From Lepidodermella squamata (Eukaryota > Animalia > Gastrotricha), in NCBI GenBank assembly GCA_047495785.1, contig JBLDXI010000073.1, positions 372,001 to 436,000 on the forward strand: a DNA stretch of 64,000 nt, in the 5' to 3' direction. Numbering within the stretch: the stretch's first letter is position 1; each line of letters opens with the position of its first letter. Of the stretch, positions 2,778 through 50,775 are shown one piece after another. A program made the position numbers and the translations under genes. The notes beneath the pieces are model-generated. The model saw nothing but the letters and a program-made list of their open reading frames with translations. It made no database searches and was not told where the DNA came from.

Positions 2778-5104
2778 ATGAGCCCGATGTTCCTCTTAAT
2801 TCTCCTTCTGCCACTCACAGGCTTATGTGATAAGCCAACCCTGCGAATTCTAAACCTTATGCCCTTCACTGGTCTTCAGCCTAATGAGTACAAAACATGC
2901 CGAGCTGTAACTGAATTGGTTTATCAGCTTGCTAACGAGCGTAAGGACTTGTTACCAAACTACAAGCTAGAACCTCAATTCTCGGACGATGGCGCTGGGG
3001 CTTTAGCAGCCCGGCGCCTACTCGAATTTGATGACCAGTTTTTAAACGGCCGCATTCCTGGTCAAGATATCTACAAGGCGCCTGTGATCTCCGGGTCATA
3101 TGTTTTTTGTGAGTATATTGCTGCCTTTGCTCACATCCTCGACTACGTCCAAATTGCTTCTTGCACAAGTGAAATGCTCTACAACCGAGCTAAATTCCCG
3201 AATATCTACTTGATAAGGCCAATAGGGTCGCAAGCTTTCATTGCTAGACTGAGATTCATGGTTGATGTTGGAAAATGGAAGTATTACGCAATCTTCGCGA
3301 ATTCCAACTCTGAATTCATTAACGCGAAATTTCTCCATAGTTCCGGGACAAAGCTAGGCCACGAAATGGTTTTCGACGTGATGACAGATTTCGACGAACA
3401 AACGGCGGCAGCCTTGAAAAAAGCTGATATTCGCGTGATTGTGCTCGTTTATACAACGACTAGCATGGTTTCGAAGTTACTATGTCAATTTTACGAGTAT
3501 GGCATAACCGGTTATCGATACGTCTTCATTCTGCCAGGAAGCACTTTCGCAGAGCCGAATACGCTGCCAAAAATTATCAGCCCTGGATGTACGAGGGAAA
3601 TGATAGCTATACAGTTCCAGTCTTCAGTCTGGGTCTCATCTCAGGTCATTACAGATGAGGTAAATGTTAAATCCACTCTGGGATACAGCTTGATAGAAAC
3701 TGATCTGTTACTCGATAATTATACAAACAAAATGAGACATCCTGATTACGGAACTCGTCATTTATGCCATGATATAGCCCTTCAAACTATCCTCTTGCTT
3801 AACGAAACCGAGGCGGGATTGAGGCTAGAAGGATTGTCCTTACTCAATGTTACCCAGCTGCCACGTTACATTGCAAAAATAACGAACGAAACCTCTCCTA
3901 AGATTACTTACATGGGTCTTAGAAAAAGTGGATTGAGTATCTACAACGAAAGAGCGGAGATAACGGGGAACAAGTGGCCAGTGTTTCGATGGAACCCGAG
4001 AGATGGCCAAAGAAATGTGGCTATGATTGTTCAAAAATCCTCAGGAAGTAGCGACGAATTCTCAACATATCTAACCCAACAAATAGCCGGGATAAAGTGG
4101 CCAACATCTGATGGCGAGCCACCAAACGAACGACCGTTTGTAAAGTTCGAATCGAAAAAAGTCCCACTCGCGTTGAGGATCATTATTTACATAGTATCAG
4201 TATTGTCCATCGTTTTTAAGTTAATGGTGATTGGAGATGTTTTAAAAACCCGAAATGATGATCAAATGCCGGCATCCTCAGCGTTCATATTCGCAGCTTT
4301 TTTACTGGCGGACATGGCTTCCATTCTATTTTTGGTCGAAATTCGGTTGGCTAATGCATTTTTTCTTCATTTGGCGAGGTTTTTCCTTCTCGCTACTGGG
4401 CTCAGTGCTTCGAATGGAACATGGTTGCTAGGGTCTTTTTCCTGTTCAGGGAAGTCAGCAAGTGGATGTGTGAAAGATCCACAGACTTGCGCGAGAATTT
4501 TTTTTTCAAAAGCCAAAATCGGAATTCTCGCTTCAAACTAAAACTGGCAAAATATTCGGCCGAGGTTTCCTTGAAATCGAGCAAACGTGACATTTCTATT
4601 ATCAATTATTTCCGTCAAATTTTCCGAAAATTCGACCGGTTGACTTTACTAACTGGTACAGTCGTCTCCGGTGCCATTCTGATCTTTATGATAATATGGT
4701 TTTCAGTCGACAATATTTCATGTGAACAAGTTCCGCTGCAAAGAGACTTGATCTACCTTGAAACCGAGGATGTTTTGCTGCAGGAATATGCTTTGAAATG
4801 CTCCTCGCATCATCAAAGCATTTGGATGGCCGTTATTCTTGCAGCTAATCTCCTAGCTCTGGTTTTCGGCTGCTACTTTGCCAGGTTTCTCTGTCGAACT
4901 GCTAGTTTCATAAAACAGTATCCCGATAGCAAGTTCGTACTAAGGGCGATGCTTAATGCTATCGCAATATCTATCGCAACTTGTCTTATACTTATCGCTG
5001 TTCCGGAGTCTCCGGTAACGGAGCGAAATGTTGTATCCGTGGCAACTGTCGTTGTATCGATCTCGTCGACTACAATTTTATACTTTCCTCACTGGAAAAC
5101 TTAA
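2778..5104 (+). pseudogene. GABA-B-like class C GPCR copy 1 (Venus flytrap + 7TM), single 1-nt frameshift at ~4420
   Basis: ORFs 2682-4541 and 4421-5104 together match paralogs 2-4. Copy 1 reads GGA-AC-ATG-GTT where copy 3 reads GGA-GCG-ATG-GTT. Either a young pseudogene or an assembly indel. Confidence 0.85.
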
Positions 5105-5149
5105 CCGCCGGCCTGAAGTAATAGCAAGTTGCACGCCATCGCTAATCAT

Positions 5150-5176
5150 TGTGTGTGTGTGTGTGTGTGTGTGTGT
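5150..5176. repeat. (GT)n microsatellite
   Basis: About 13 TG units, directly visible. Confidence 0.95.
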
Positions 5177-5393
5177 AAGGTTGTGAAAGGTCTAAGGTTC
5201 AAATAAGTTGTGGATTAGGATTGAGACTTGCGTTACGCTTTAACATCCTCTATTTCAAGATTCGGATAAAAATTAAGAAGTGACTATATTTCTCTGATTC
5301 ATTTGACCGGTAGCAAGTAAATATCTACGTTGTATACTTACATTCAACAAATTTGCATCATATTAAGGTTATTCAGTTTTAATACCCGTCTGA

Positions 5394-7016
5394 TCAGCCA
5401 AACTTTACTCTCATGCGAGGGTGCACAGTTTGATCAGTCCGTTTTCCGGCTGAAAGGAGAATGTCAATGGTTTTCAGCTTGTTTTCCTCCGACACGTCAT
5501 CATCGTCGCATTTCTGAGCGAGGAGTAGAGCTGTCCAGCCTGTTGACGGCGCCTTGTAAGTGGCGTCAGCGCCCGCCACCCGTATTAAAACATCTACAAC
5601 GTTGTGGTGGCCTTTCACTGATGCACACATGAGCGGTGTCATCCATTTTTCAGATGGTGGATCTTGACCGAGTATCTCTGACAACCGAGATGAGACCACA
5701 TTGTTGACGCACAGAGCATTTACATCGGCATTGAATTCCACGGCCAGAATTCTCACGATTTCGGCCTGTCCATTCAGAGCAGCGTAATGCAAGGGAGTCC
5801 AGCCATTTTTATTGGAGGCATTAACGTCAGCTTTGAATTCTCCGGCAAGATTTCTCACGATATCCGCGTGTCCTTTCCAAACAGCGTCATGCAAGGGAGT
5901 TCTGCCTAATACATTAGGGCCATTAACGTCAGCTTTGAATTCTCCGGCAAGAATTATCACAATTTCCGCGTGTCCTTTCCAAGCAGCGTAATTCAAGGGA
6001 GTCTCGCCATTTTTATCAGAGGCATTAACGTCAGCTTTGAAATTTCCGGCAAGAATTCTCACGATTTCCGCGTGTCCATTACGAGCAGCGTAATGCAAGG
6101 GAGTCACGTCAGTTTCTTTACGGGCATTAACGTCAGCTTTGAATTCTCCTGCAAGAATTCTCACGATATCCGCGTGTCCATTCTGAACAGCGATGTGCAA
6201 GGGAGTTAAGCCTAATTGTTTCGAGGCATTAACGTCAGCTTTGAATTCTCCTGCAAGAATTCTCACGATATCCGCGTGTCCATTCTGAACAGCGATGTGC
6301 AAGGGAGTCTCGCGTTCATCATTAATGTCTTCAACATTGTCTTTCTTGGCAATAATTCTCAAGATCCCCGCGTGTCCTTCCCTGGCTGCGATGTGCAACG
6401 GTGTCATGCTATCTCTCGATTTTGCGATTGCATTAGCTTTGAATTCTTCCGCAAGTAAAATAACCATGTCCTTATGGCCTCTGAGCACGGCCAAATGCAA
6501 CGGTTTATAGCCCGAATTCATTGACTTCTCCACATCAATGAATTCAGTTGCTAGAATTCTTGCAACTTCCACATGACCTTCCATAGCAGCGACATGTAAC
6601 AAAGTCATGCCTTGCTCATTCGTTATTTGAGTGTTCGCTCCCATTTCTTTCGCTAATAATTTAACAGTAGTAGAGTGGCCGTTCTCTGCTGCAGCCCATA
6701 TCGGTGTCTTACCATCTGCAGCTGCAATGTCAACACTTCTCCGTGTCAATTTTCCAAGCATTCGTGCAATCTTTGCTCGACCATTAACAGATGCGACGTA
6801 GATCGGCGTTCTTCCCAGTAGGTCCTTAGATAGTGGATCAGCCTTGAACCTTGTCACCAGAAGATCTACTATATCATCACCGCCCTCTTGTGCGGCCAGA
6901 AACAACGGGGTAACACCTTCATCATTCTTGCAGTTCACATCCAAATTCAAAGTTGAGTTTGATAACAACAATTCAATTTCTGTTGTGTTGTGTTGCCTGA
7001 TGAGTCGAAAGAGAAA
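5394..7016 (-). CDS. Ankyrin-repeat protein 2 (long single exon; 5' exon/start uncertain)
   Basis: 543-aa ORF with G.TPLH.A...GH repeats. A polypyrimidine tract plus CAG near 7017 suggests an upstream exon. Confidence 0.88.
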   Translation of the reverse strand, partial: FLFRLIRQHNTTEIELLLSNSTLNLDVNCKNDEGVTPLFLAAQEGGDDIVDLLVTRFKADPLSKDLLGRTPIYVASVNGRAKIARMLGKLTRRSVDIAAADGKTPIWAAAENGHSTTVKLLAKEMGANTQITNEQGMTLLHVAAMEGHVEVARILATEFIDVEKSMNSGYKPLHLAVLRGHKDMVILLAEEFKANAIAKSRDSMTPLHIAAREGHAGILRIIAKKDNVEDINDERETPLHIAVQNGHADIVRILAGEFKADVNASKQLGLTPLHIAVQNGHADIVRILAGEFKADVNARKETDVTPLHYAARNGHAEIVRILAGNFKADVNASDKNGETPLNYAAWKGHAEIVIILAGEFKADVNGPNVLGRTPLHDAVWKGHADIVRNLAGEFKADVNASNKNGWTPLHYAALNGQAEIVRILAVEFNADVNALCVNNVVSSRLSEILGQDPPSEKWMTPLMCASVKGHHNVVDVLIRVAGADATYKAPSTGWTALLLAQKCDDDDVSEENKLKTIDILLSAGKRTDQTVHPRMRVKFG

Positions 7017-7045
7017 CTGAAACAACGAAGAAGAAGTATATTTGT

Positions 7046-7187
7046 ATGATATAGTACGAGTGTTTCATTTATATCTGAGATTCGTAGCACGAGATGCGGG
7101 CATGCAGACGAGCCGGAGCCGAGTCGGCATGACCAAATCGAGTGCGGAGAATCCAGATATGAATGAAACACTCGTGTGCTATATCAT
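7046..7187. repeat. Palindromic (hairpin) repeat element
   Basis: ATGATATAGTACGAGTGTTTCATTTATATCTG (7046-7077) is inverted at 7154-7187. Confidence 0.75.
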
Positions 7188-7463: not shown

Positions 7464-8520
7464 AATTTTCGCAACGCAAAATAATAAATAATAAAAAATC
7501 CAACTTAAAATTTCATCGAAAAATGGCTTTCTATTCATTCTCGCTCATTTTTCTCATTCGTTTGAATTTCGTCTCGTTTTGAACGTCGATTTTCTGTCCG
7601 ACTGAAATTCTGCCTTGATAATCGCAGCTGGGAATGGTAGAATCGACTGTGTCAAAGCTCTTCGAAGGTCTGATTTGAATATGGCTAGAGATTCAGACAA
7701 CAATACGGCTCTGCACCTTGCTGCTTCGCGCAATCATTCCGAAGTTGTGAAGTTTCTTCTCAAGCTCAACGCCGATCCAACGATGTTGAATAAGGCAAAA
7801 CAAACACACCGCTGTCAAACACCGCTTTTCGAGGCCTTGAACACTTGCAGTAAGGAAACTGCGAATCTTTTGTTGATGGAGAATAACAGCTCTAGTAACA
7901 GTTCAGATCCTCAACTGAAGGCGAACTCTCCAGCTTCAGGTCTTGCCCTTCTCCACCTGGCTGCTAGATGTAATTTCGGCAAAATAACTTTAAAATTGAT
8001 CGGAAACGCAGCTGCTATGGATCTGAAGTCTGCGAATGAAGATATGTCGCCTCTAGTCTATGCTACTTCTCACAAATCATGGAAAGCTGCTAGATTGTTG
8101 ATCGAATCCGGCGCTGATGTGAATTCTCTTACTTCAAAATTCAACAAAAAATCTGCGCTGAATTTCGCGGCTGCGGAGAATAATTTCGAGGTCGTGAAGG
8201 CTTTGTTAGATGCGGGGGCTGAAATCGAATCTGGAGGAATCGAGACTCCCTTACTCTCTGCTTGTCGAGGCAATGCGACAGGTTCGGCGTTGTTGTTGCT
8301 GAAATCTGGAGCTCAGGCGAATGCGAAGCTAGGCGATGCTACGGCTGAAACGTGTTTGCATATGGCTGCGAATTTTCGCAACGCAAAATAATAAATAATA
8401 AAAAATCCAACTTAAAATTTCATCGAAAAATGGCTTTCTATTCATTCTCGCTCATTTTTCTCATTCGTTTGAATTTCGTCTCGTTTTGAACGTCGATTTT
8501 CTGTCCGACCGAAATTCTGC
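7464..8520 (+). repeat. 150-bp direct repeats (7464-7613 and 8371-8520) flanking the ankyrin gene fragment
   Basis: The two copies differ by one base (ccgacTgaaa vs ccgacCgaaa). Confidence 0.95.
7610..8372 (+). pseudogene. Near-identical partial copy of ankyrin gene 1 (source ~1155-1902)
   Basis: Translation is almost identical to the middle/C-terminal part of ORF 347-2047. It has a few substitutions and a 15-nt internal duplication (KQTHRCQTP), and no start or signal exon. Confidence 0.93.
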
Positions 8521-9779: not shown

Positions 9780-10288
9780 ATATAGATTTTCCATGTCAAA
9801 AATATAGAAACACCTGAATCTATATTTCAGATATGGAACAGAAATATAGTTCATATTATTCAAATCTATATTTGAAAAATGAAAAAATATTCCCAAAAAA
9901 TCGGATGGGATAAAAGTTATACAGTGATAGTCAAAAGATCCGCACGGTGGAATTGAGGCGATGCTAGTTGAAATTTTTCGCACGTGCGAAATGAGGCTGT
10001 TTATTCCAAGCAAAACGGACCAAAATGACGCCTTTTTCACGATCTCCAAAAATAGCTCCAAGGAAAGGGTGTGACTTTTTTCATCCGACCAATGTCTTTT
10101 TTTATCCGACCAATGTCTTATTTCATCCGACAACCAAAAATGTGACTAAAAACATCCGACAAGGGTGACTTTTTTCATCCGACAAAATAAAGCTGTCGGG
10201 CGTGTGGATGGCGCAGCTTCGGCTCAGCTGTAGCGCAGCAAAGGTTTTAAAAGCGGAATGTTTTTCCATTCATTTCATCAATCTGAGA

Positions 10289-12802
10289 ATGGCGTTTTCA
10301 CTTTTACCACTAATTTTTGTGTTCTCTGTTTTCGTGGCAAATTTGCCGCTGAACCTCTACTCATCCTCGGAGTCCGAATCCGATGATGGCGAATCTGATG
10401 GCGAATCAGAAGATCGCAGCGAAGGAACCAGCGAGGAAGATGCGGATGAGCATCCTGCTGTCAAGAGAACGTATGAATATGATCAGCATGTTCGACCGTC
10501 AGCTCCACCGGGTGGACTACAGCAGTCACTTGATTGGCTTCGCCGATACGACCCTTACATCAACTGGACCAAAACTCGGGTGAGCAATGGGCGAGGGCAG
10601 GTGTATGGCAAATGCAAATTTCATAAGAAGAAAGGCTACGAGCACTGCCCTGTTCGATGCACGTTGCATGTCAACAACAACGACTGTAACGCCGAGTTCA
10701 GTGGAACGCACAATCACAAGGAGGTTGATCGTCGAATAACACCTCAGCTGATCGCTTACGTCAAGAATTCGGACCCGAACACTCGACCGAAGAAGCTTCG
10801 AACGATGATACGCGATGCAGGGCTTGGGGATTTCACAGGGCGAGTAGGTTTGAAGTCACTCCGAAACTTGAAGTACCGGATAAGGCGGGAGGAGCGAATC
10901 GAAGCCTTAATGCGAACAGGTCTTTCACGCGAAGAAGCCATTCTGAGCGGACCGATGGGCACAGTGGAGTTGCAAAACTGGTGCGATGCGAGAATGGAAG
11001 AGCCTGAAGATGAAGACCAGCCGTTCGTTGTTAGCTATCGAATCAACACGAAACCGACATTTTTCTCAGGTACGATGAAAACATCCGACAAACGTCTTTT
11101 TTATCCGACATTCTCTTTTCAGTCTGTTTGTCAACTCCTCGACTTCTACGGAACCTCGACAATTCTAAGGGCTTCTTGCAAGTCGATGCCACGCACAAGC
11201 TCATCCGACAGCCTGACAGAGCCAAGGTTCTTGTCGCTGCAACTTCCGATCGCGATCGCCGATGTCACCCGGTAATGGTGTCGGTTTCCTCCAACGAGAA
11301 TCAGCAAGCGTACGATGAGCTTTTTTCTGGTATGCTATTCCATCCGACAAACGTCTTTTTTATCCGACATGGTCATTTTATAGGAATAAAGATCGCTCGA
11401 CCTGAGTTCTATCCCAGCCATGTCATGGCCGATGGCGCTGACTACATAACGAACGCAATCGCCAAGGCCTGGAAGAAGGCGAAGAGGTCAATGTGCTGGT
11501 ACCACGTGTCGGCTAATGTCAAGAAGCACATTCACAAGTCTGAGAAGGAAATCAAGCAAAAGGTAATGTGTCCGAAAAATGACTTTTTTATCCGACATTC
11601 TATCGTATTTATTCCAGATAAGAAGTGACATCTCGCTGCTTCAACTTGCTCGGGACTCGGAGGAGTTCGACAACCTTCGACAGCTTTTCGTCGACAAATG
11701 GCGTGACAACGCGAAGACAAGAAGCTTTGTCGAATATTTCGAAAAACAGTGGTTGACCTCCGACGTTCAAGGCTGGTACGAGGGATTTTCGAGTTCACAA
11801 ATCGGGAGAAGGTGCTTCTTCGGAACTTTCTTACTCTTACAGCGTACGAAATGCTCCAGAGTTGGTCCCGCTACGATGACGCCTGGGCTGAAGTTGCGAC
11901 AGTTTCGAAACAGTTGAAAACGCAAGCTTGGCAGTTTTTAGCTTCTGATCAACCCAAGATTTTGCCGGCAAGTGATCAAGTCTACTGCTACGTCATCTCA
12001 ACAGGAAACGCTGATCCCGCATTGATTAGGGCGCTCAACTACTCTCAGTATCAGTCTCTCGGACAGTTTTCTGAAGCTTTGAATTCGGCGTGGTTTCTGG
12101 AGGCGAGGCCTGGCCGGGAAACGACATGCTCTTGCCGAGTCGGAGTTAAGAAGATTCCCTGCGTTCACGCGATCGCTTTGCGCCACAGCCTGAAAATCGA
12201 TCGGATTCCTCCTGAACTGCGATCTCTGCCGCTGGCTGCTCCGAGTAAATCGTCACGTGGTCGAAATGCGAAGGTTGGAACGGCGCTTCAGGTCGATGAG
12301 ACAACTGAGCTTGAGGGCGAAGTTCAGCGAATGAGCATCTCACCTGTCGAATTGCAAGGTGGATATCGAGGAGCCAACGCCGTCGCCTGACTTTCCGTCG
12401 CCAGTTCGCCGTGGTCGCCGTGCTGCTACTGCTGCTGCTTCCGCATCGGAGTCTGAAGAATCGATGGTCGAGGAAGATTACGTCGTTAGTCGAGGTTCTG
12501 GTACTCGAGGTGGCCGAGGATCTCGTGGCTCTCGCGGTATTCGAGGTTCTCGAGGTTCTCGAGGTTCTCGAGGTTCTCGAGGTTCTCGAGGTAGTGGTCC
12601 AGGTTCTAGCGTTGGACGTGGCTTCGGGTCTCGTGGCGGTCGTGGCTCTAGTGGTGGGCGCGGGTCTCGTGTTGGCCGTGGAACTCGTGGAGGCCGAGGT
12701 GGCCGTGGCTCTGCCGGTGCAACTGGCGGTCGTGCTGTTGGCTCGGTCGATGTTGCCGCTCAGCGGCACACGAGAAGCAACACTCGACTGAACACAGCTT
12801 AA
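10289..12802 (+). pseudogene. MULE transposase; introns 11070-11122, 11330-11383, 11563-11617; frameshifts near 11790 and 12358
   Basis: N-terminal C..C..HxH WRKY/FAR1-type finger, DATHK (D1), MADGA (D2), CWYH, SWIM finger CSC..C.H, and an RG-rich tail. The TNN..E motif is missing after GWYEGF. Confidence 0.88.
12505..12600 (+). repeat. 9-bp tandem repeat (CGAGGTTCT)n encoding (RGS)n
   Basis: Directly visible; lies in ORF 12359-12802. Confidence 0.9.
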
Positions 12803-13057
12803 TCACGTGACTGTTAATTTTCTTGAATAGCGTTGTCGGATAAATAAAGTCACTTTTCTCTTGAATACATACGTGTCGGATGTTTTTAGTCACATTTTTG
12901 GTTGTCGGATGAAATAAGACATTGGTCGGATAAAAAAAGTTTTCCCCCAAGGAAATGGGGATAGTTTCAATAATATGAATATATTCATGAGATGTCATGA
13001 AACTAGGACATTCTTAGATAAGAGCCAAAAATTGCAGAAAAATTTGAGCAATTAGAG

Positions 13058-14140: not shown

Positions 14141-15714
14141 CTAAAATTTTGACACTATGGTAAGCTTCCGATCTTTATTATTATCTATGCCACTTACCAT
14201 CTGTGCAACTTTTGGATCCAACAACTCTGTGAAACTGATCTCATGCGCATTGTTCAGGAGTAGCGGAGAATTGGGATCATTCAAAGAGTTGAGTAGATCT
14301 AGCGGCGGCATACGCCTCGAACTATCTTTCACCAAAAATGCCAAAATAATGTCTCGGAACGCGGACGAATAGCCACGCGAATCATCAAATGGTATTCGAA
14401 TGTTTCTGAAAATGTGTTGTCGTGATTCTCCTGAGATTTTCAGGTATAGAACTTACAGCATGATATCCAGGGCATTCTCAAACTGGGAAGAAGCCACGTG
14501 GTAAAAAAGTAAAAGACTTGGAAATAAAGCTAACAGGCCTGTAAAAATTGGCTAGCTCGAACAAAGTTACACCCAAAGACCACCAATCGCTTTCGTTCGA
14601 GTGCTCATTTTTGCCAAATAATTCAGGCGCCATGTACAGCTCGGTACCAAGCCTGAAGTTGTACGCTGTCCTTTGGATACTGTTCGAAGAGCTTGAAGAG
14701 TTGTTGACACATTGCGGAACAGTTATTGTAATGAATCGATTCGTCAGTTTTTACCTATCATAAATCTTCGTCAGACCGAAATCGCCGAGTTTTACTTTAC
14801 AATTGTGCAGGAAAATATTCTTCGGTTTGATGTCGCGATGGAGCGCTCGCCTCTCATGCAGAGCAGCCAGAGCCGAAGCAAGTTGTAGCGACCATTCTAA
14901 TAGCAAAACTTGAGGAATGGGACGACCATTTGCTTTCTTCATGTAGTCATCCAAGTCTCCACCCGAACAGTATTCCATGACAAGGTAATACACCAGAGAT
15001 CCAGATGTTTCTCTCTCTGTGGCAAGAGAAGGAAGCATAATGTTGAAAAGGAAGCGCAGCTCGTCAAACGTCAATTTGAGGAATTGTCCGGTTAAATAAT
15101 GGAGTAAGATGTTTTTGTTAAGAAAGAATAGAAACGAAATTCCATATTTTTTCACTACGCTTTCAAGAGATGAAATGGCTTATGGGTGAAAGAGACTGGG
15201 TTGAACTTGAACTTGTGTACTTGAATCCCACAGCCAGTAAAAATCCCAAGAACTGACATTTTCATCAAATTTCACGCATTTCCGAACAAGACCAAGCACA
15301 ATTGAATTTTTTTGCCGCGTTGTTCGGCAATGTTCGTGCCGATAAGGCTTAAATTTAGTTCGCCTAAAGTGGGTGGACATAACATACCTGCGAAAGCTCC
15401 AAAAACATAAACAACATTTGGATGTGACAATTTGTTTAATTTCTCATGCTGCAGAAGCAAAAGCTGCAAAAGAGGTCGCAACTAGGTGAAATCGTTACCT
15501 CTTCCTTGCTCAAATTCACCAGCCTTCCTGCGAAAGTTGGTTCCGCGGCAAATATTTCACGAATTCGCGTGAGGTTTACTGCCTTGACAGCGTAATGCGC
15601 TACGTCGTTACTCCGCCGGCATAGCATCGTGGAGCCGAAGTAACCACTTCCCAATGACTTCTCGATTTTGAAGTCCTGCATTGAATAATACGTATTTTCC
15701 ACACCTGCAGCCAT
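14141..15714 (-). CDS. NEK-like Ser/Thr protein kinase, ~6 exons (15714-15499, 15448-15388, 15016-14755, ~14690-14538, ~14482-14456, ~14405-14141)
   Basis: Motifs GSGYFG, AVK, MEYCSGGDL, HRDIKPKNIFL, KLGDFG, GT..YMAPE and SDWWSLG lie across GT-AG introns. The 3' exon borders are approximate. Confidence 0.85.
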
Positions 15715-17158
15715 GATTGCCCCTCGTTGAACAAAATGAATTCAACATACAGTATGCATTAGGCGAAAAGCAAGTAACACATTAAGCTGAAAAAAACGAT
15801 GACTATATGTTATATTCTATAGGTATATGGCATTAATATATGAATTAATTGTTTAATATGAAGGCAAGTACTTGTACACGTAAGAAAATGAACGAACAAC
15901 AACAATGTATTTTTTGGCGAAACATTTACTTCAGACCGGATATAAACGCTGCAGTACAATTGACGCCAGTTAAAGGGTGAGAAGTTCGATTTACTGAAAT
16001 ATTCAGACATAAGGTAATGATGGGCCATCAAGGGTCACAGGTAGCGAGGACCCTATTCAAATGTTTGGCGAAAACATCGACAATTTAGGATGGATTTTTC
16101 TACAGAGAATTGTTCGCCGGATTTTATCATAAAATTCAAGCACGCGGTTCCGAACGATGAATTTTCAGTCGTCGAAATACAGAAATGTTGACATTTTTCA
16201 TTCGCAATTTTCTCCCTACTATGGCTTGTTTGAATGAGTTCACATCGGCATTAAGCTTTTCAATGGAGCTTTTTGCAACCAAATTTTTTTCAAGATGATC
16301 CCAGATTGTCCAGAATTTGAAAGTCATAATTGGACCGGCCTTGTTTGCTTGGTTCTCTATGCACTTCGTTCTCTATGCAGTGGGGTATCCTATTTACATC
16401 CCATGCTAAATGATAGAATTTATCTTTAAAACTGACGTACTGTGGCGCGGTCCTTTTTCTGACGGGTAATTTCGAGGTATGTCCTTTGTTATTTAAGCTT
16501 GTTACCAATTTTACATGACGACATGATCAATTGAAATTTTTATAACTGAGAACTAAAATTCCAAAGTGAATTTCTGAATTTCTGTTCGGCTGCATCGCAA
16601 TCCTAAGCAATACTGCAGGTTTCATTCACGTGCTGAATCTAATTCAAAGTTCTAGGTATACGAACAATCGCATCGTATGCTTTCAACGGTTGAACCTGTT
16701 TTTTCAAGTTGCGTGATGTCCTAGTCCGTTATTTCTCTTCAAGCCCTCACGGCGGCAGATCGATGAGTTGCTATCGAAAAATGTGCGACGGAAATGTGAA
16801 ACACTCATCTCCTGCACTCACGAGTGTAAATGGATTCCGAAATTTGAAAATCATCATACGGGGACCGGGGCCGTGATTCCGGGGAGTTCGAACATTACCG
16901 GCGTCCAGCTGGGTTAAAGCTCGTTTGCAATAAATAGTACACGCGAAGATAGTTGACACTTGCGTTGGTTGAACATCGGACAGTTTCCTCCCAAAACACT
17001 TAAACACCCCACCCTACAAAGGCCCCACCCTGAAGCTCTCAGAATTCCATCCTGTAATATTTGCAAAAATAACTCTGTAGGCGTTAGATCTTCCGAACTC
17101 TGTGAGATCACAGGAATTAATAGAAAAATACAAACATTACTATTACCTTTTATTCAAA

Positions 17159-19796: not shown

Positions 19797-20350
19797 TTAG
19801 TCCACCTTAATTAATTCGTCGAAGGATGAGCTTGGCGAAACTATGCGAATATGGGAAGAAATCTCTGACCCCGAAGATCCTTTCGGCGTATGGTTTACTT
19901 GCAAAGCTGTCAAGCCTCTTTCGTCCCGAGTCCGTTTGCTGTGCTGGTAGACGTGCTTGCTGAGCTGAGTAGGATTGTCGAATCGCTGTGAACAGGCAAA
20001 GCATGAAGCGGCGAATTTATCGGGATGGCGCTTTCCAACGTGGTAGCGAAAGCCGTTGAGGGAAGTATACAGCCTTCGATTAGAACAATACTCGCAGACT
20101 AATCCTACTTTTCGCTGCTCTCCATTCATCACATTACCAAAATTTGGGTAAGAAGAGTCAAGAAAATGTTTGACCTAGAGAAAGACAGGTTGCAGACAAA
20201 CATCGAAATTCAAAAAATCAATTTTACCAATAGTGAGAAGGGGAGTCCTCGTAGCCGGAATTTAGTGGGATTTCCGCGGTTGGATGGAAAGCTGAAAGTC
20301 TGGTTGAGTTTAGTACGGCAAGGTTTTGCTTTCGTGACGGGAGAGCCCAT
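19797..20350 (-). CDS. Small C2H2 zinc-finger protein (two fingers); putative intron 20175-20227
   Basis: Fingers CEYC..H....H and CFAC..F..L..H...H. A phase-0 splice links to an open frame from ATG 20350; the true start is uncertain. Confidence 0.65.
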
Positions 20351-35960: not shown

Positions 35961-37111
35961 TCATCCTTGAGTACGCTCGCACAGGCCGGCCATAGTGGTA
36001 TCAGCGCAAGAAGCTCGTTGAAGCGAACCAGAAGATAGCACCACGCCTGGAAAAATTAATTGATCAGTTCATCAAATGAAATCTAGGTTTCATTCCTAAC
36101 AGTGTATCTTGTCGTCTGGCTCGCCATTCAAACTGAACAACGTGCTGTTGAAGGAACTGCCTGTGATCCAAGAATAAGAGACCAAGTCTCTCCGTTTCCC
36201 ACCGATGATTCTTTGACTTGGCGCTGGAACCAGCAACAAAGCAGCATCAAATGCCGCTTGATCCTTAATTGTAGCCAAAGTTTTATTGATGCCGACACAG
36301 TATCCGGCCACAATCTCAATAGAGTTAGCGTATAATGTTAGCTCAAAGGTAGTAGGACTCTTTAAAAAAGTAACAACAGTTCTTTGAGGTTGTTTATAAT
36401 AAGGCATTGCACTTACATTGCCGCAAATGCCATAAGTTGCCCAATCGCATGGAACGTCGATGAAGCCGGCTTGTATGACATGAAACAGCAACATACCTGT
36501 CATCATAATTCAAAAATTAATTCAAGAAAAACATCAAGTGGACCACGTAATAATGTGAGTTTGCTCCAACACGGGCGCTCCAAATTTTAGCCAGTTTTGA
36601 CAAGGAAACCCAATAAATGAAAAAAACTCACATGAGCCGGAGTTTCCCGGCGCACCGTACTGGCCAGTTAGCCAGAAAGGGGAATCGATCGCAATGAGAG
36701 ACCCATCTTCCCACGTGAAGTCGGCGACCAAGCCGATGAATGCAGATGAGTTAGCAACGACTTGGTTGGCCGCCGTCAAATCATCCAGCGATGAGAAAGT
36801 TGCCAAACGGGAGCCTGGTACCGCCTTACAGGCGTCGAGTTGCGAACGGAAGTGGCCAGCAGCTAGAGGGGAGATGAAATATGACGTCGAGGTAGCAGCT
36901 GGTTTCAGGTCATTCAAACACGCGGCGTAGTTGTCAGCAAATTTAGTCGAGTTCGAATATATGTTCAGCTGTATTTGTCAGCAATCCTATCATTGCAGTT
37001 TATTAAAGAAGCTCATTCGGAAGCTCACCCGAGTCGATCCGTTCGGGCAGATGTTGTAACATTTCTTGCCGTTCGGTGTATCGCATTGAGCAGCATACTG
37101 GGGAATATATT
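35961..37111 (-). CDS. Cys-rich segment plus two C-type lectin domains (multi-exon; possibly the 3' part of the gene starting at 38742)
   Basis: CTL1: C..RLATF..FIGL..F.WEDGS..W..G.P..C / DVPC..GIC. CTL2: YC..LATI..IGGKR..YSW.TG..GEPD..C / C..GLCE*. GT-AG introns. Confidence 0.78.
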
Positions 37112-37500
37112 CTGAATTTCAGCGTATGAAATATGATCCTCGAGCTGGTTAATACATTTGGGCACTATCGGCCCCGAGTTTGTTGGACTAAAGGCTGAAG
37201 GGCCCCATGTGATTTCTTGTCTCGAAGTTCAAGTTCGATGTGGGCATCAAACACGTATGATACCGACATCTTCCCTTAATAACCCTGAAAAATAGCTTGC
37301 CAATCCCCTGCCAAGAAAAACACATGTCGATTTCTTCACAACTTTGTAGCTGGGGCGATTTTTCGGCAGGATTTCGAACTATCGCTAGTGAACAATCTGA
37401 CCCTTATTCAATTCTTTACGCCGATTCGAGACTTGGTACGTTTTTCGATGGTAAAGCACCGCACGAGTGTTAAAGGTTTTTATATTAGACGGTCTAAGGT

Positions 37501-38742
37501 CTAAATAATGATTACCCATGACAAGCAATTGGCTTTGTTTCGATAGGTGCCAGTAGAGAACTCTTCGGTTTCATTGGCCATGCAACGCGAGGTGCTCAAT
37601 CGGCAAGCGGTGAATTCCCGAGTGACGGCATTGAAGCAGCGGATGTGAGGCTTTATAGAATCAGCGACGTCGCCTATGAAAAAAAATATTCGTTTTTTTT
37701 GCTGATATTTTATTTTCAAATTAAAGCTAATATCTATTCTAATCTAATATTAAATCTGATATCTAAAATTAAATTTCCAGGGAAAAAACTCAATAGCTAA
37801 CTCACTGCTGGCACTCCGAAGACAGGCGTCCAAGTTCGAAAATCCCTTGGCATTTTTAGCCTAGCATTTGATATAAAATGTTATAAGAAATTAAATATAT
37901 CATGGATTACCCCTCTAGGGCAAGCGAAGTCGCTGGGAACGCAAGTGAAAAACTGTTGATCGATGCATGAGTCAAACTTTTGATTCTGTAAATCATAGTG
38001 ATATATTGCAATTAATTAAGAAGAAAAATTCAAACCGGGAAGGATTTGAAATCGCTGACGCATGGGGCCAGATTTGTTCTGAATGGATAAGCACCGTTGT
38101 ATGACCCACCAACCTTGAAACAATTGAAATCGAATATTCTTAGTAGAATCAGTAATTGGTAGGAAACATGAACATTAAATGAACATATTTTTATCATGGA
38201 ATTATGGAATTTTATCCAGGATTCAAACTCCTGCTATTGAAAGATTTACAATTTTAGCAATTTTTGTTTCAAAATTATGGGAATTTGCTAACATTGTCTG
38301 ATTTTGAGAGCATCGTGCCTCGCGAATAATCGAGTCAGAAATTTCTTACCATTATTTCATCGGTTTTTCTGCATCCAGGTGAGCCAGGTCGGCAAGATGC
38401 GGCGAAATTTGCGAATCTGTAGCACAATCTCGCAGTCTGCAATTATCGGAATTTTCTTTGAAAATGTCTAAATCTGAAAAATAGTTTTTACCGCACGTAG
38501 GCACGTAAATTTGTCTGGAACATTGTCACCGAGCTGCCGAAAAAATTAATGAGAAATAGTGAACATTTGAAAATAAAATAGCGTCTCACCTGGTATTCGC
38601 GCAATTGATAACAGCCGTTTGGATTTTCGCGACACTCCGTGAATGCATCGTCGAATTGCGAGAAACAACGCGCCCACTCGCCGCATCGCACTTCGTTAAA
38701 GAAAGCGAGCATCGCGATGATTAATGGCAGTAGTAATTTCAT
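37501..38742 (-). CDS. Secreted cysteine-rich repeat protein, six phase-consistent exons
   Basis: Signal MKLLLPLIIAMLAFFNEVRC. Exons ~38742-38590, 38436-38350, 38113-38036, 37985-37911, 37860-37806 and 37673-37501 splice in phases 0,0,0,0,1. Confidence 0.75.
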
Positions 38743-38894
38743 TGTGTGATTGTGTGATTGGAATGGCTGGATAGCTGCTGCTTTCAAGCGATATTTATCG
38801 AATAACGTTAATAATCTTAAACAAATTCATCTTTATACTTTACACATATGTGAATGAACGAAGAGTGTTTAAGAATCAACACAAAATAAACTCT

Positions 38895-39250
38895 TCATAT
38901 CGGCGCAAGAATCTCTTTGGAGCGAACCAGATGAAAGAACCGCGCATGGAAAATTAATTGAGATCAGCGCAAGACAGCGTTTCTTCCCTAGCAGTGATTT
39001 TCGAATGTTGGCTCGCCATTTAAAGCGAAGAACGCGCTGTTAAAGGGATCGCCTGTTATCCAAGAGTATGAGACCAAGTCCCTCCGTTTCCCACAGATGT
39101 AGTATTGATAATATACGGATCCATCAACTGCTTAGCAGCTCCGAATTTCGCTTGATCCTTGATTGTAGCGAAGGTTTTTGAGATGCTAACGCAGTAAGCT
39201 GCACGTTGGTCCCTAGTATCAGTCATTGATGTGACTTCAAGGCTATAAAT
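38895..39250 (-). pseudogene. Frameshifted copy of the second C-type lectin domain of the 35961-37111 locus
   Basis: YCVSISKTFATIKDQAKF matches YCVGINKTLATIKDQAAF; GKRRDLVSYSWITG is in a shifted frame; a last-exon homolog is present. Confidence 0.8.
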
Positions 39251-39354
39251 GTTGAAATAAATGTTCGGCTGTGATTTTACCATCTTATCATTAAAGATCA
39301 GTCATGTAACATTTCTTGCCTTTTGACTTCTGATTATTTGTATTAAGCTATTTA

Positions 39355-41760: not shown

Positions 41761-42939
41761 TCAAGTAATGGAGAAATATCGATATTATCGGGTTACTAAA
41801 CGCTCGGGAATTTAGAATGAATGTTGAAGTAATTTAAAAAATTCAAAAGTGAGGTGAAAATATTTCCATCGCGCAGAAAAAACTGCTCTCACGTGGAACA
41901 GATGGCGCCGTAAGAAGTCGCGAGCTTGAAAAGTAGCTGGTTTTCTCGCTTGTATTTTTTAACACGCTTTTCAAAACTGAAAAGCAACCCCGTCTGGCTC
42001 GTGCTATTTTCCTGTGTTGGTTGCGCTCATAGACAACTCTATACAGATCGAAAACTAGCGATCTTCCTATAGTAAATATAAAAACAAAATTCACACCAAA
42101 AGTAGGCACGCGACCATTTTTATTCACTCCTCGCCCTATCTGCTTATTGTAATTTTTTCCGATTTTCAATTATTCTCTAAAAATCCTAGAGAAAATCTTT
42201 CATTACCCACGAATTCCAATTTTTTTTCCGTAATACTAGCGCCGCTCCTCTATCGAATGAGTCCCGTCTCATGAGACAGTTTTTTTTAATTTTTTTGAAA
42301 TTGCCGTAAAGTTGGTCTTCTTTACGAAAAACCGCCATTACGAAAGAATTACGAGTCTTTCAGGCCGATAAAAAAATTTATTTTACGCCGAAAAATTCCG
42401 AAGAAAATACTATTATCTTATTTGCTCTTATCTAACAATATAAAACTCGAGCAAATCTTTCGATAGGGTAAAATTTTATTGGGGAAAAATTGCCTACTTT
42501 CATTTATCACGGGCTTTTCATCCTATCGACTCGTACTATATGCTACCACCAATTTAATGAGATTTTTGCTTTTTTTAAAAACCACACATAAAAACAACTT
42601 TTTATAAGCAATAGTGAGCGGCGGATTAGCTTATTAGTTAAGCTTCGCCAATGCTGATCGAAAAGTCGCTGGTTTAAACCTCATGATATACTGATAGGCA
42701 AGAGCCTATTGATCAGCAGAGCAGCTTGATTCGACAGCAGAATATTATAACCCTACGATTCGAATATTTTCAAATATGACAGCGACTGCTAATTTTGAAG
42801 GCATGAAGCACAGGATCTTGAAAAGAATTCTAATAACTGATTGAGGCGGCAAATATTGAAGGTTTTTATATTACAAGGGCGCGTGGAAAAAATGTGTGAA
42901 TGAACGTAGTGAGATAAATAATAACTCGATGTGTAACCG

Positions 42940-43400
42940 CTAAATAGATTCAGAGGTCTCAGAATTTTCCTTGTAAATAGGGGGTTAAGGCAAGGCTGCC
43001 CGCTGTCCCCTCTACTTTTCATTGCCACCTTAAATAAAATCTGCGAAACATTAGCCTACGAAAAACTGGGATTTCCTATTAACGACACTGATTTTCTAAA
43101 CTTGTTAGCATTTGCCGATGATGGAACACTACTAGGCATGAACCATGACGAAATCAAACGCCTTCTTGAAATCTTGAAATCTCTCTATGGTACCTACCAT
43201 CATTTACGCCTGCGAATCATGGAACATTTCTCTTAATGTTATAGAACTTAATTAGAATTTCGATGGCTTCGTTCTATTTTGGGAATTCATTCAATTGACT
43301 ATCAGACTTGCACTTTGCGGGAGCTTGATATCTTTGAAGTCAGCCGTATTATTGAAAAACAGCGAATGAGGTATTTAGTATACGTACATAATTAGATCGC
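42940..43400 (+). mobile_element. Non-LTR retrotransposon (LINE) reverse transcriptase remnant
   Basis: GLRQGCPLSPLLF ... NLLAFADD read in one frame from ~42982. Confidence 0.88.
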
Positions 43401-44461: not shown

Positions 44462-45658
44462 TTAATTACAATTATTCGTTGCTATGTTTGTCATATTTGT
44501 TGATTGCTGAAATATAGGTGGTGATGTAAATACAACTCCGTACGCATACGTATTGATTGCGATAAAAATGACAGCAGCCGGCGTGAAAACCACGGCGTCA
44601 ACAATCCTCTTCCTAGTAACCTGCATCGTTCGGCCAAATGTTTGCTTAAAGTAATCACTATGCGATTTTGAAAGGCCATAGATGATCAGGAAATAAGCGT
44701 TGAGGCTCAGAGAGTAGTAAGCATTCATATCGATGAAATCGCTCAAGAAAATCCTCTGAGGCGTCAAAGGCACGCTTTGTATGACCTGGCCTTGTAAGAC
44801 GGTTAGCGCCAATAAGATGCTTACGGCGAAGACAGGTCGGTCTGGGGAGGAAGGTTCCATGCAAAAGCTCAATGTGTTGAGAAAAACCAACAGCGTGCAA
44901 GGGATCATGAGGTGATTCACGTAGTAAGTTGGATCCCGTCGTATTGATATCACGAAGGTAGCAGCCGCTCGTTTCGTCTCGCCTGAATCAGCCAGTCCCA
45001 TCCACATTTCGCTTGTAACGCGTCGCCACATGTCAGACTCGAAATATTGCGAGAAGAACATGCTTTCATTGTCTAACTTGAATACAGCAGCGTGGCGATT
45101 CTCCTGCAGCATGAATTGAACCTCGCAGCGTTGAACATCGATCGGGAACCATCGCAAGTTCATAGCACAAGCTGAGACGAATGATCCGGTGATGCCGAGT
45201 TGGAATGCGAATGAAGTTTGGTTTTCGATTTTAACAGTCATCCGAGTTGAAAAACCAGTCGACATATCGGAGTTCACGGGCGAATTCTGGTGGCTGATTC
45301 GCGGCCTCCAAATCGCGTCCTCATCCACGTAGAATTTAAAGGTCCCATTAGAGGAGTGGTTATACTCCGTACAATCGACATACCAGTAGAGCTGTAGTGT
45401 ACCGAAAATGACAAAGGTTTCGTCGATATCGTCAACATTCCTCAGCTGATCCGCGCTGAAATACATGAAAATCTCGGTTACATCGCATTTGCCGCTGTTT
45501 TTTCCGAGGGGACAATCCGGCGAGTAAGACTCAGGGGAGAAGTGAGGGCATTTATCAAGGATCTCAAGGGCTCGCCTCATAGAACTCGGCGGAACATTGC
45601 GGGCATGATAGCTACTTGCCACAATCAAAAATAGGATGAAATTCACCGTATTTTTCAT
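44462..45658 (-). CDS. Cys-loop ligand-gated ion channel subunit (non-alpha nAChR/5-HT3-like fold), intronless
   Basis: Signal peptide, IWRPRI (loop A), Cys-loop CAMNLRWFPIDVQRC, IRRDPTYY pre-M1, four TM helices. Confidence 0.93.
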   Translation of the reverse strand: MKNTVNFILFLIVASSYHARNVPPSSMRRALEILDKCPHFSPESYSPDCPLGKNSGKCDVTEIFMYFSADQLRNVDDIDETFVIFGTLQLYWYVDCTEYNHSSNGTFKFYVDEDAIWRPRISHQNSPVNSDMSTGFSTRMTVKIENQTSFAFQLGITGSFVSACAMNLRWFPIDVQRCEVQFMLQENRHAAVFKLDNESMFFSQYFESDMWRRVTSEMWMGLADSGETKRAAATFVISIRRDPTYYVNHLMIPCTLLVFLNTLSFCMEPSSPDRPVFAVSILLALTVLQGQVIQSVPLTPQRIFLSDFIDMNAYYSLSLNAYFLIIYGLSKSHSDYFKQTFGRTMQVTRKRIVDAVVFTPAAVIFIAINTYAYGVVFTSPPIFQQSTNMTNIATNNCN

Positions 45659-48366: not shown

Positions 48367-50775
48367 ATGATATCAAACATGTCTCTCTCGTTTATGATTG
48401 TAATTGTCGCCTCAGTAGTTTCTGTGAGGTGCGAGCTGCCAAAGCTGCGACTACCTAACTTCATGCCATTCACCGGGTTGGAACCTAACAAGTACCAAAC
48501 ATGCAAAGCTATGGCTGAACTAGTTATCGGGCTAGTCAACAATCGCAGCGACATTCTGCCGAATTACAAAATCGAGCCTCAATTCATCGATGACAACAAC
48601 GGGCCAATGCTAGTTCGCCGTTTTCTCGAATTCGACAATCAATTTACTGGCAACAAACTCGATGAGAATACTTTCAAAGCTCCTATAGTGGTTGGCCCGG
48701 TTAGCTCTTGCGAACTGATAGCTTCGTTCGTCAACAAACTAGGATATGTTCAAATCGCCCAATGCGCATCAGATGTATTGAAGAGCCGAGCCCGTTTCCC
48801 GAATTTGTACCTAATCCGACCCTTAGGAGCTCAGTCTTGGATATCGCGGCTTCGTTTCATTGTCGATGTTGGGAAATGGAACTACTTCGCGCTGATTGTC
48901 AACGCGAACCAAGATTTTCAAGGGGCCAAACTCATGCAAAGGTTGGCGATTCAAAATGGCGTTCAAGTCTATCTTAACGCAGTTCCGGAATTCGACGACA
49001 GCGCTGCGATGGCTTTGAAACAATCTCAAGCTCGTATAATTGTTGTCTATGCAACTGGTCCGATGAACTATCAAGTCCTGTGTCGCTGTTTCAACCTCGG
49101 AATGACTGGTCCGAGGTACGTTTTCATCCTGGCAGGTAGCTCCTTCGCAGATCCAAGGACCTTACCAGCCGTTATCTACCCAGGCTGTACCAGGGAGATG
49201 ATTTTCACTCAAAGTCTCTACTCAATCATGGTTACGTCTCAAATCGTAACAGATGAGCCTTTGGTCAAGTCTGAGTTGGGCTACAATATGGTTGAAATGG
49301 ATAAAATGTTGGATTTATACACGAATTACTCAAGACTCCCTGACTACGGCAATCGCTACCTATGCCATGACGTAACCCTTCAAAGCTTGCTACTATTGAA
49401 TCGGACCGAATATCGACTTCAAAGAATGGGTTTGAGTTTAAGGAATATCACCACCCACCCTGATTTGATTGCTAGAATAATGAATGACTCGGCGTTGCGA
49501 ATGAGTTACATAGGCCTGAGGAAGAGCGGTCCGAGCTCTTACAGCCAAGATCGGGGGGAGATGATGGGCAGTAAGTGGCCCGTACTTCAATGGAACCCTA
49601 CAGACGGCCTTAGAGCTATTTGGATGGTATCCCAGGCTGAGAGTAACGATTCAAGCAACGAACTGTCAATGTACTCAACTTACAATGTCCTAAAGCCGAA
49701 ATGGTACACATTGGATGGGACACCGCCCGCGGACAGGGCTGACGTACGTTTTCAGGTTCAGGAAATTCATCTGGCACTCAAAATCACCATGTTCGTGCTA
49801 TGTGCGGGTTTGATCACGATCAAACTTGGCGTTGTCTTGCAAATTTTGCGCTACAAATCTCCCGACAAGTTTCGACGAATGCCATACGCCTCGACATTGC
49901 AATTCATTTTCCTCTGCCTCGTCGATATTTCAGCCATCATTTTCGCTGCGGAGGTTGATGAAACACGAATGATAGCCACCCACATGGCTAGAGTTTTAAC
50001 CCTCGTAATCGGTCTAAGCCTATCGAACTTCTGCATGATATTCCGGACAATCGCTGCGAGTAGCTTGGTTGCTAATGTTAAGCAGAAGGCGAAAGGCGAG
50101 CGGTTTTATTGGGTTCAAATGACCTTCAAAAAATCGAAGGGTGACCGGAACTCAGGTCGGGGTGGCAGCGGCACGATCAGGCCAACTCCATCCTCCGTCA
50201 GTTTCCCCCCAATCAATCACGACGACTTCTACTTGAAGAAGATTTGCCGCGAAACGTTCAGCCAACTCGAAAGGAAATGTGCGATTTCAAACGTGATAGG
50301 ATTTGCGCTACTGGTTGCTTACGTAGCGATTTGGGCGTGCTTTGACCCTACCAACTGTGAGAATATTATGGTAACCCCAAGCCCTGTCTATTACGATGAA
50401 ATCGATACTTACATCTCAACCTCAGCCGTGAGTTGTCACGGGGATTCTCAAGACATTTGGTTTCTGGTCATTTTTGGGGTTAACATCGTGCTGCTAGTTA
50501 TCGGTTGCCTTTATGCCAGGAAAATGACCAGAGATACTAAGTTCATCTTACACCATTGGGATTTTACGTATCTGTTCTATGGTATGACGAATTGTATCAT
50601 AACTATGTTAGCTTCATTTCTCGTTTTGCTGGCTGTTCCTAAGAGTCCGGTTACGATCAGGATTGTTGTGGCTATTTCTGCGATTTGGATATCAGCTACA
50701 ACATCAGCTATTTGCTATTTGCCGTATCGAAAGAATCCAGTCCTAGTACGAGATGAAAACGAGGTGAAAGTTTGA
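48367..50775 (+). CDS. GABA-B-like class C GPCR copy 6 (subfamily B), intronless
   Basis: ~800-aa ORF collinear with copy 5; TATAAATA at ~48322. Confidence 0.92.
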   Translation: MISNMSLSFMIVIVASVVSVRCELPKLRLPNFMPFTGLEPNKYQTCKAMAELVIGLVNNRSDILPNYKIEPQFIDDNNGPMLVRRFLEFDNQFTGNKLDENTFKAPIVVGPVSSCELIASFVNKLGYVQIAQCASDVLKSRARFPNLYLIRPLGAQSWISRLRFIVDVGKWNYFALIVNANQDFQGAKLMQRLAIQNGVQVYLNAVPEFDDSAAMALKQSQARIIVVYATGPMNYQVLCRCFNLGMTGPRYVFILAGSSFADPRTLPAVIYPGCTREMIFTQSLYSIMVTSQIVTDEPLVKSELGYNMVEMDKMLDLYTNYSRLPDYGNRYLCHDVTLQSLLLLNRTEYRLQRMGLSLRNITTHPDLIARIMNDSALRMSYIGLRKSGPSSYSQDRGEMMGSKWPVLQWNPTDGLRAIWMVSQAESNDSSNELSMYSTYNVLKPKWYTLDGTPPADRADVRFQVQEIHLALKITMFVLCAGLITIKLGVVLQILRYKSPDKFRRMPYASTLQFIFLCLVDISAIIFAAEVDETRMIATHMARVLTLVIGLSLSNFCMIFRTIAASSLVANVKQKAKGERFYWVQMTFKKSKGDRNSGRGGSGTIRPTPSSVSFPPINHDDFYLKKICRETFSQLERKCAISNVIGFALLVAYVAIWACFDPTNCENIMVTPSPVYYDEIDTYISTSAVSCHGDSQDIWFLVIFGVNIVLLVIGCLYARKMTRDTKFILHHWDFTYLFYGMTNCIITMLASFLVLLAVPKSPVTIRIVVAISAIWISATTSAICYLPYRKNPVLVRDENEVKV

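Follow-up and report, generated by a model that had tools for sequence, protein, structure and literature searches.

Expanded class C chemoreceptors are known mainly from vertebrates, in the form of the V2R/OlfC and T1R receptors. Clustered expansion through birth and death is typical of V2R/OlfC genes, and both T1Rs and V2Rs use a common partner subunit. The receptors GPR156, GPR158 and GPR179 have a GABA-B-type seven-transmembrane (7TM) domain and long tails, lack a Venus flytrap and are not activated by gamma-aminobutyric acid (GABA). To our knowledge, the chemoreceptors of micro-invertebrates are largely unidentified. Expansions of GABA-B-like receptors have been published for Trichoplax (37 genes), Saccoglossus (29), Amphimedon (21) and Stylophora (16) (PMC10133484), and sponge-specific class C receptors have been described (PMC4302439). 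Here, we analyze a 64-kb stretch of the gastrotrich Lepidodermella squamata genome (contig JBLDXI010000073.1, positions 372,001 to 436,000; hereafter the window), which carries six single-exon genes for G-protein-coupled receptors (GPCRs) of class C and of the GABA-B type.

The six copies resemble GABBR1 and GABBR2 in joining a flytrap, a stalk and a 7TM bundle without a cysteine-rich domain, in the beta-hairpin of extracellular loop 2 (ECL2), in the cysteine pair C239/C274 and in overall fold (template-modeling scores, TM-scores, of 0.6-0.8). They differ in having about 20% identity, few of the GABA contacts, no coiled coil or RSRR motif, a tail of 4-16 residues, an intracellular loop 2 (ICL2) that is 30-60 residues longer, a second ECL2 cysteine in place of the cysteine of transmembrane helix 3 (TM3), a single exon and multiple copies. 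As in the expansions of Trichoplax, Saccoglossus, Amphimedon and Stylophora, orphan receptors of the GABA-B type whose pockets are altered have multiplied within a lineage. What distinguishes them, as judged from alignments, is that the canonical G-protein face was lost throughout the family, together with a cysteine swap in one subclade. A literature search of incomplete coverage found no published family of intronless, tail-less GABA-B-like chemoreceptors.

Six single-exon genes encode GABA-B-type receptors

The six receptor genes all lie on the plus strand and form two subfamilies, A (copies 1-4) and B (copies 5-6). Their proteins are 72-84% identical among copies 1-4, 60% identical between copies 5 and 6, and 41-46% identical between subfamilies; a tblastn search across the 64-kb window found no seventh copy or remnant. 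Five of the six genes are unbroken open reading frames (ORFs) of 761-802 aa, each with a hydrophobic, signal-peptide-like N-terminus. These are copy 2 (17159-19498), a 779-aa single ORF running from the signal peptide through flytrap, stalk and 7TM to an 8-residue tail; copy 3 (22067-24415; 782 aa); copy 4 (28997-31282; 761 aa), with a shorter ICL2; copy 5 (32774-35182; 802 aa); and copy 6 (48367-50775; 802 aa). Copy 1 (2778-5104) is pseudogene-like; the evidence on it comes from tblastn, Pfam, alignment to copy 3 and a contig of sequencing run X1. The ORFs, tblastn matches and identities agree with an earlier sequence-only reading of this DNA, which had described six co-oriented single-exon paralogs in two subfamilies.

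All six copies score above the Pfam cut-off for ANF_receptor. The 7tm_3 model is exceeded by copies 1-4, copy 6 falls below its cut-off (29 versus 33.5 bits) and copy 5 is not listed; the cysteine-rich domain (NCD3G) has no Pfam match in the six copies. The AlphaFold model of copy 6 (mean predicted local distance difference test score, pLDDT, 86.6) adopts a GABA-B fold with seven transmembrane helices, a stalk and an ECL2 beta-hairpin; model and family alignment place its flytrap at about residues 23-455 (48433-49731, plus strand). In Foldseek comparisons the model has TM-scores of 0.58-0.69 to GABA-B subunits versus 0.33-0.41 to mGluR, CaSR and T1R structures, and its match in a structure atlas is a GABA-B1 cluster (0.79). 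Copy 2, folded from its single sequence, gave an uninformative model (pLDDT 38), and the structural comparisons are those of the copy 6 model. Against PDB sequences, copy 6 alone finds human GABA-B1 (E 2e-12), and a 38-member family profile scores 334 bits to GABA-B1 (full-length, E 1.7e-98), 280 to GABA-B2, at most 82 to mGluRs and at most 73 to T1R/CaSR. GPR156, GPR158 and GPR179 give only a non-significant PDB match (E 0.64). These Pfam, profile and Foldseek results uphold the proposed GABA-B-type architecture without a cysteine-rich domain, and they show the five intact copies to be predicted membrane proteins composed of a Venus flytrap, a short stalk and a 7TM bundle. The V2R/OlfC and T1R receptors are likewise class C flytrap receptors; however, they belong to the CaSR/mGluR branch, have a cysteine-rich domain and introns, and T1R/CaSR match the family weakly (at most 73 bits; TM-scores of about 0.35-0.41). 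Any likeness between them and the window family would therefore be convergent.

The tails are as short as first described, with 4, 8, 8, 9, 14 and 16 residues following the TM7 proline across the six copies, and they contain neither a C-terminal coiled coil nor an RSRR retention motif. An AATAAA about 30 nt past the stops of copies 5 and 6 supports the short tails as real. An additional spliced C-terminal exon is unlikely in view of these AATAAA sites and of the short tails that recur in relatives.

The copies belong to a distinct family of the GABA-B branch

At E<1e-30, 24 proteins of only 22-34% identity were recovered by an exhaustive HMMER search, and the ten best are ENA metagenome proteins. 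The loci that we fetched for these relatives lie in metagenome assemblies of marine appearance and belong to an animal with a compact genome and small introns, where the receptor genes are also intronless. The mitochondrial IF-2 of these relatives is about equally close to insect, fish and mollusc sequences (41-47% identity). In total, the family has at least 34 relatives in marine-metagenome animals. A word-index homologue search found no match for copy 2 and four for the family profile; because this method requires proteins of similar length that share exact words, its blank points to divergence rather than absence.

We built quick maximum-likelihood trees with Shimodaira-Hasegawa-like approximate likelihood ratio (SH-aLRT) supports, drawn at the midpoint without an mGluR outgroup and containing long branches. 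The six copies form one clade (support 100), are joined by five marine proteins (98) and sit inside a 40-member family (99) that is apart from GABA-B1 orthologues and from cnidarian and hemichordate GABA-B-like proteins. The published GABA-B-like expansions sampled here, a set with no named Trichoplax or Amphimedon sequence, differ from the window family, which is a separate long-branched group in the trees. The sampled Nematostella, Ptychodera, Saccoglossus, Lingula and related proteins also keep the K574/R577/I581/F582/LNDS motifs and a fixed ICL2 length, in contrast to the window family, which lost the motifs. By these sequence comparisons, the copies are members of a distinct, fast-evolving family of the GABA-B branch that is common to at least two animals. 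Since another animal shares it, the family is older than this genome's lineage. The suggestion of an independent, lineage-specific expansion is overstated in this respect, and GABA-B-like expansions had already been published (PMC10133484).

Most of the GABA contacts are replaced

GABA-B1 contacts its ligand through W182, S247, S270, H287, Y367, W395 and E466 (PMC12499500), and in our alignment these seven residues are invariant in six GABA-B1 orthologues. In the six window copies, W182 has no counterpart, H287 is replaced by R, Y367 by S or T, W395 by S, E466 by T or N and S270 by T or A, and S247 is retained in at most three of six. With the contacts mostly replaced, binding of GABA by these receptors is unlikely.

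The same replacements bear on whether the copies could be divergent but true GABA receptors, that is, GABA-B1/B2 orthologues duplicated in this lineage. GABA-B1 and GABA-B2 are their best PDB and fold matches, and an approximately unbiased (AU) test does not reject a tree that forces the family together with GABA-B1 (p=0.26). However, besides the altered pocket, the copies have no RSRR motif or coiled coil and are only 19-25% identical to a fish GABA-B1. We consider true GABA receptors very improbable indeed; the free trees and the residue tests speak against GABA-B1/B2 orthology, in line with the earlier reading, while the AU test leaves the forced grouping with GABA-B1 standing.

Two pairs of flytrap cysteines stand out. 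Those at copy 6 positions 46 and 333 occur in all 39 family members aligned. Positions C115 and C133 co-vary, with both cysteines in 32 members, neither in seven and a single one in none, in counts that are not independent because kin share states. We infer that C46/C333 and C115/C133 may form two extra disulfides that frame the lobe-1 pocket. Variable sites among copies 1-4 make up 17 of 43 positions in the pocket loops versus 103 of 389 in the rest of the flytrap (p=0.07), and family-wide pair identity is 0.15 in pocket columns versus 0.25 in the rest of the flytrap (p=0.15). Diversification of the pocket among paralogues is thus suggested by alignment at most.

The canonical G-protein face is lost family-wide

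The GABA-B2 subunit contacts Gi through R577, I581 and F582 in TM3, through ICL2 and through L686 in ICL3, and its full coupling requires its proximal C-tail (PMC12499500). None of the six copies has any of the four equivalents of R577, I581, F582 and L686. Across 20 other GABA-B-like proteins, R577 is exact in 20, I581 in 18, F582 in 16 and L686 in 19. General divergence does not explain the loss, because R577 and F582 are present in 10 of 10 control proteins that are equally diverged, with I or V at position 581. Columns conserved at 75% or more number 35 in the flytrap and stalk of the family and five in its 7TM, with none on the cytoplasmic side, versus 60 and 67 in the other GABA-B-like set. 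The alignments show that the canonical G-protein-binding face, as predicted from GABA-B2, has been lost across the family, a feature that the sequence-only reading had not mentioned. GABA-B1, the non-coupling subunit, likewise lacks R577 and L686, and in this the six copies are like it.

Other parts of the cytoplasmic side were kept or enlarged in the window. R3.50 is present in six of six copies, D6.35 in five of six and the TM7 proline in six of six. TM4 ends 70-103 aa after R3.50, versus about 41 in GABA-B proteins, and the ICL2 stretch itself is 36-69 aa long, with 7-13 Lys/Arg and 10-14 Ser/Thr residues, versus 9-12 aa in two GABA-B references; it is basic, Ser/Thr-rich and disordered. 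In copy 6, the cytoplasmic end of TM3 and this long loop (about residues 560-630, low pLDDT) occupy 50044-50256 on the plus strand, where R3.50 is kept and the equivalents of R577, I581 and F582 are gone.

The retained residues and the long loop could belong to receptors that signal by themselves, as homodimers or as heterodimers of subfamilies A and B, with a non-canonical G-protein coupling in which ICL2 would act as a docking and phosphorylation site replacing the GABA-B2 contacts and the C-tail. The strong constraint on TM5-7, with a ratio of nonsynonymous to synonymous substitution rates (dN/dS) of 0.09-0.20, also fits such autonomous coupling. ICL2, however, is the least conserved part of the protein, with a nonsynonymous divergence (dN) of 0.27-0.69 among copies 1-4 and a very variable length family-wide. 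Most marine relatives lack the set of R3.50, D6.35 and TM7 proline; even R3.50 and D6.35 are not retained among them. We regard autonomous coupling as rather unlikely, though it competes more closely than any other rival.

Conservation along the protein raises a further alternative. Across the family, conservation is lower in the 7TM than in the flytrap (0.16-0.17 versus 0.25), the opposite of other GABA-B-like proteins (0.38-0.43 versus 0.31). Such a profile would suit proteins that do not signal or act independently of G proteins, for example as ligand sinks, decoys or recognition and adhesion molecules, with the 7TM serving mainly as an anchor and dimer scaffold; the absence of any conserved cytoplasmic column and the loss of the TM3 cysteine tether point the same way. 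Yet the copy 6 model keeps the parts through which activation passes in GABA-B, namely all seven helices, the stalk and the ECL2 hairpin, and the 7TM is still under purifying selection. Proteins of this kind are improbable here.

A subclade swaps the TM3 cysteine for a second ECL2 cysteine

In class C GPCRs, a TM3 cysteine that partners an ECL2 cysteine is otherwise general, both in our alignments and in common knowledge of the class. None of the six copies has the TM3 cysteine at its position, and neither do their nearest relatives P0001, P0002, P0006 and P0012; in copy 6 the site is H539 (49981-49983, plus strand), and copy 3 has one cysteine three residues before the position, outside it. 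All ten of these proteins carry an extra cysteine at the start of ECL2. The remaining 29 relatives retain the TM3 cysteine, and the extra ECL2 cysteine is found in none of them. According to this distribution in the alignment, the swap happened once, long ago, in the subclade.

The AlphaFold model and alignment locate the ECL2 beta-hairpin of copy 6 at 50356-50436 (plus strand), with C664 gained and C690 conserved. The two cysteines lie at the base of opposite hairpin strands (residues 663-668 and 681-691), a placement that fits a cross-strand disulfide. We infer from the model that a C664-C690 bond within ECL2 may replace the TM3-ECL2 tether.

The cluster evolves by duplication, exchange and loss

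All pairs of copies are under purifying selection. The dN/dS is 0.10-0.17 for the flytrap and 0.21-0.28 for the 7TM, which within the cluster is the less conserved of the two. Among copies 1-4, the 152 informative sites switch only 72 times and are thus grouped in blocks (p<2e-4); copies 5 and 6 share a flytrap tract with few synonymous differences (p=0.0005). Both patterns indicate gene conversion or unequal crossing-over.

Copy 1 is one base short at about position 4420 in the alignment to copy 3, near the cytoplasmic end of TM3 (frameshift at 4419-4421, plus strand), and its stop comes four codons ahead of those of copies 2 and 3; for comparisons it was read through with an X at the break. 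A 739-nt contig of run X1, which may be the assembly's own sample, covers 4079-4817 with zero differences and zero gaps, so the frameshift is present in the DNA of run X1 and an assembly error is not supported. A variant with an inserted G in another contig of that run matches the sequence of copy 3 itself. We rejected a 26-nt GT..AG intron (about 4423-4448) that would rescue copy 1, as the same stretch of copy 3 codes for TM3 and local introns are about 50-70 nt long. The pairwise dN/dS of copy 1 resembles that of the intact copies, which suggests that the loss is recent. The cluster thus shows local duplication, DNA exchange between copies and loss of a copy by frameshift. The single frameshifted gene noted at first sight is real, and with six copies, one pseudogene and gene conversion, the proposed clustered birth and death is borne out.

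This dynamic bears on what the receptors would sense. One alternative is that they respond to internal cues, such as paracrine amino acids, taurine-like metabolites or gut nutrients, as in proposals for placozoan and cnidarian GABA-B-like receptors. In favor of this, conservation of the flytrap among paralogues is strong and some homogenization has occurred, and the published expansions have been read as amino-acid signaling or nutrient sensing (PMC10133484). However, dozens of paralogues, an unconserved pocket (pair identity of 0.15 in pocket columns versus 1.00 in GABA-B1) and ongoing pseudogenization fit an outward-facing repertoire better, by analogy with V2R- and OR-type receptors as generally known. 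Receptors for internal cues are accordingly ranked as unlikely.

The sequence-only reading also raised a retrocopy founder. The single-exon state extends to the six window copies and to six relatives with fetched loci. The basal relative P0020 (L007:9459-12547, also L008), on a marine contig, is intronless and lies antisense within an intron of a NALCN sodium-leak channel gene, an intron that contains a 10-N scaffold gap; its nested position fits movement through an RNA copy. No poly-A remnant was found past the stops of the window copies. These genomes have many long single exons, and the gene caller that supplied the relatives favors intronless genes. The contrast with intron-dense neighbors that had been drawn holds for an EGF/lectin gene, with introns of 50-70 nt, and for a kinase, whose ORF is broken into short pieces, but not for the ankyrin ORFs (556-612 codons) or the Cys-loop gene (398 aa), which are long single exons as well. 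A retrocopy founder is compatible with these gene structures but unproven.

A proposed model of the receptors as ligand-binding subunits

We tentatively favor, at somewhat less than an even chance, a model in which the six genes encode variable, non-GABA ligand-binding subunits of a GABA-B-type family, with a division of labor like that of GABA-B1. The flytrap would bind small molecules other than GABA, as suggested by the loss of most GABA contacts and by a pocket that appears rebuilt and cysteine-stapled. As in GABA-B, its closure would be passed through the stalk and the ECL2 beta-sheet to shift the 7TM dimer, but here ECL2 would be stapled to itself and not to TM3. Each subunit would dimerize with a conserved G-protein-coupling partner encoded elsewhere. 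A partner is proposed because the copies lack the GABA-B2 residues for Gi, end in a very short tail and belong to a family whose cytoplasmic face is not conserved. For the output, such a partner has about an even chance; signaling through the long ICL2 is possible but clearly less likely, and an output without G proteins at all is quite unlikely.

Several observations weigh against these subunits. No coupling partner was identified within the 64-kb window, which is what the analysis covered. There is no coiled coil that would hold a heterodimer together. R3.50, D6.35 (five of six) and the TM7 proline are kept and TM5-7 is constrained, which would equally fit the autonomous signaling considered above. 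An origin from GABA-B1 is not rejected by the AU test, nor do the free trees show one, and the pocket diversification does not reach significance by either measure. The expression basis is weak: a 2015 run that was merely guessed to be RNA, under another organism label, yields sparse contigs of depth 3-5 on parts of copy 1 and none in two flanking bins, too little to count.

By analogy with known receptors, a chemoreceptor role for the family is plausible. In Clytia larvae, a GABA-B-like gene is a marker of sensory-like cells (bioRxiv 10.1101/2024.10.30.621027), which we count in favor of the model. Sensing of external chemicals, such as food or cues from other animals, would be the likeliest use of the repertoire, at just under an even chance; internal amino-acid or nutrient signaling is its main alternative. 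A bolder extension, which we hold to be doubtful, is that a large chemoreceptor repertoire of the GABA-B branch was built independently by a lineage of small-bodied invertebrates, with dozens of intronless 'tuning' subunits that have rebuilt pockets and no G-protein face and would act with one shared co-receptor, convergent with the logic of V2R/T1R and of insect OR/Orco, and with a subclade that would work without the TM3-ECL2 disulfide.

If the receptors are sensory, they would constitute an independent, GABA-B-derived chemoreceptor repertoire. Whatever their role, they offer a natural experiment on class C activation, in which the flytrap, stalk and ECL2 sheet were kept and the GABA pocket, the coiled coil, the GABA-B2 contacts and, in the subclade, the TM3-ECL2 tether were dropped. 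Their importance is moderated by the GABA-B-like expansions already published.

Neighboring genes and mobile elements

The array is not contiguous. Its copies are separated by 1.5-13 kb, and a transposon lies among them together with genes for ankyrin-repeat proteins, lectins, a kinase and a Cys-loop subunit. Copy 1 has a long single-exon ankyrin-repeat ORF on either side, at 209-2047 (plus strand) and 5394-7064 (minus strand), and the second contains internal tandem repeats of about 102 bp. Part of the first (1155-1902) has a 97%-identical copy at 7610-8372, bracketed by two 150-bp direct repeats that are 99% identical (7464-7613 and 8371-8520); the region 7464-8520 is a captured or recently duplicated gene fragment. 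Microsynteny of ankyrin and receptor genes with a marine relative (L001/L002) was considered and rejected, as the ankyrin proteins are only about 21% alike.

A Mutator-like (MULE) DNA transposon at 10074-12940 looks recent; its terminal inverted repeats of 66 bp are perfectly complementary, and its transposase ORF (Pfam MULE) is split. A non-coding element at 24928-25754, between copies 3 and 4, resembles a miniature inverted-repeat transposable element, with inverted repeats of about 207 bp (97%). Weak rhodopsin-type fragments (7tm_1, E 0.02) and a reverse-transcriptase fragment occur at 25706-26772 and 42937-43233, both on the plus strand. A spliced NEK-like protein kinase gene (14144-15741, minus strand) and a C2H2 zinc-finger gene (19800-20607, minus strand) also lie between receptor copies. 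Duplicated C-type-lectin-like genes and a many-exon EGF/C-type-lectin gene are found at 35999-39300 (minus), 54700-59400 (plus) and 63484-63786 (minus); one of the 50-70-nt introns of the EGF/C-type-lectin gene apparently has a GC donor.

A Cys-loop channel subunit gene (44462-45658, minus strand), intronless and highly divergent, is head-to-head with copy 6. Together with the spliceosomal introns, a Cys-loop gene points to an animal source of the DNA. In a marine relative (L003:3065-5399), two similar Cys-loop subunits (20-25% identical) are tail-to-tail with family member P0002, so that orphan Cys-loop channels and orphan GPCRs are found together in two species. On another metagenome contig (L006:6572-12151), a divergent gene of the ionotropic-glutamate-receptor-like kind lies head-to-head with the sister-group receptor P0050, and a rhodopsin-type GPCR is close by.

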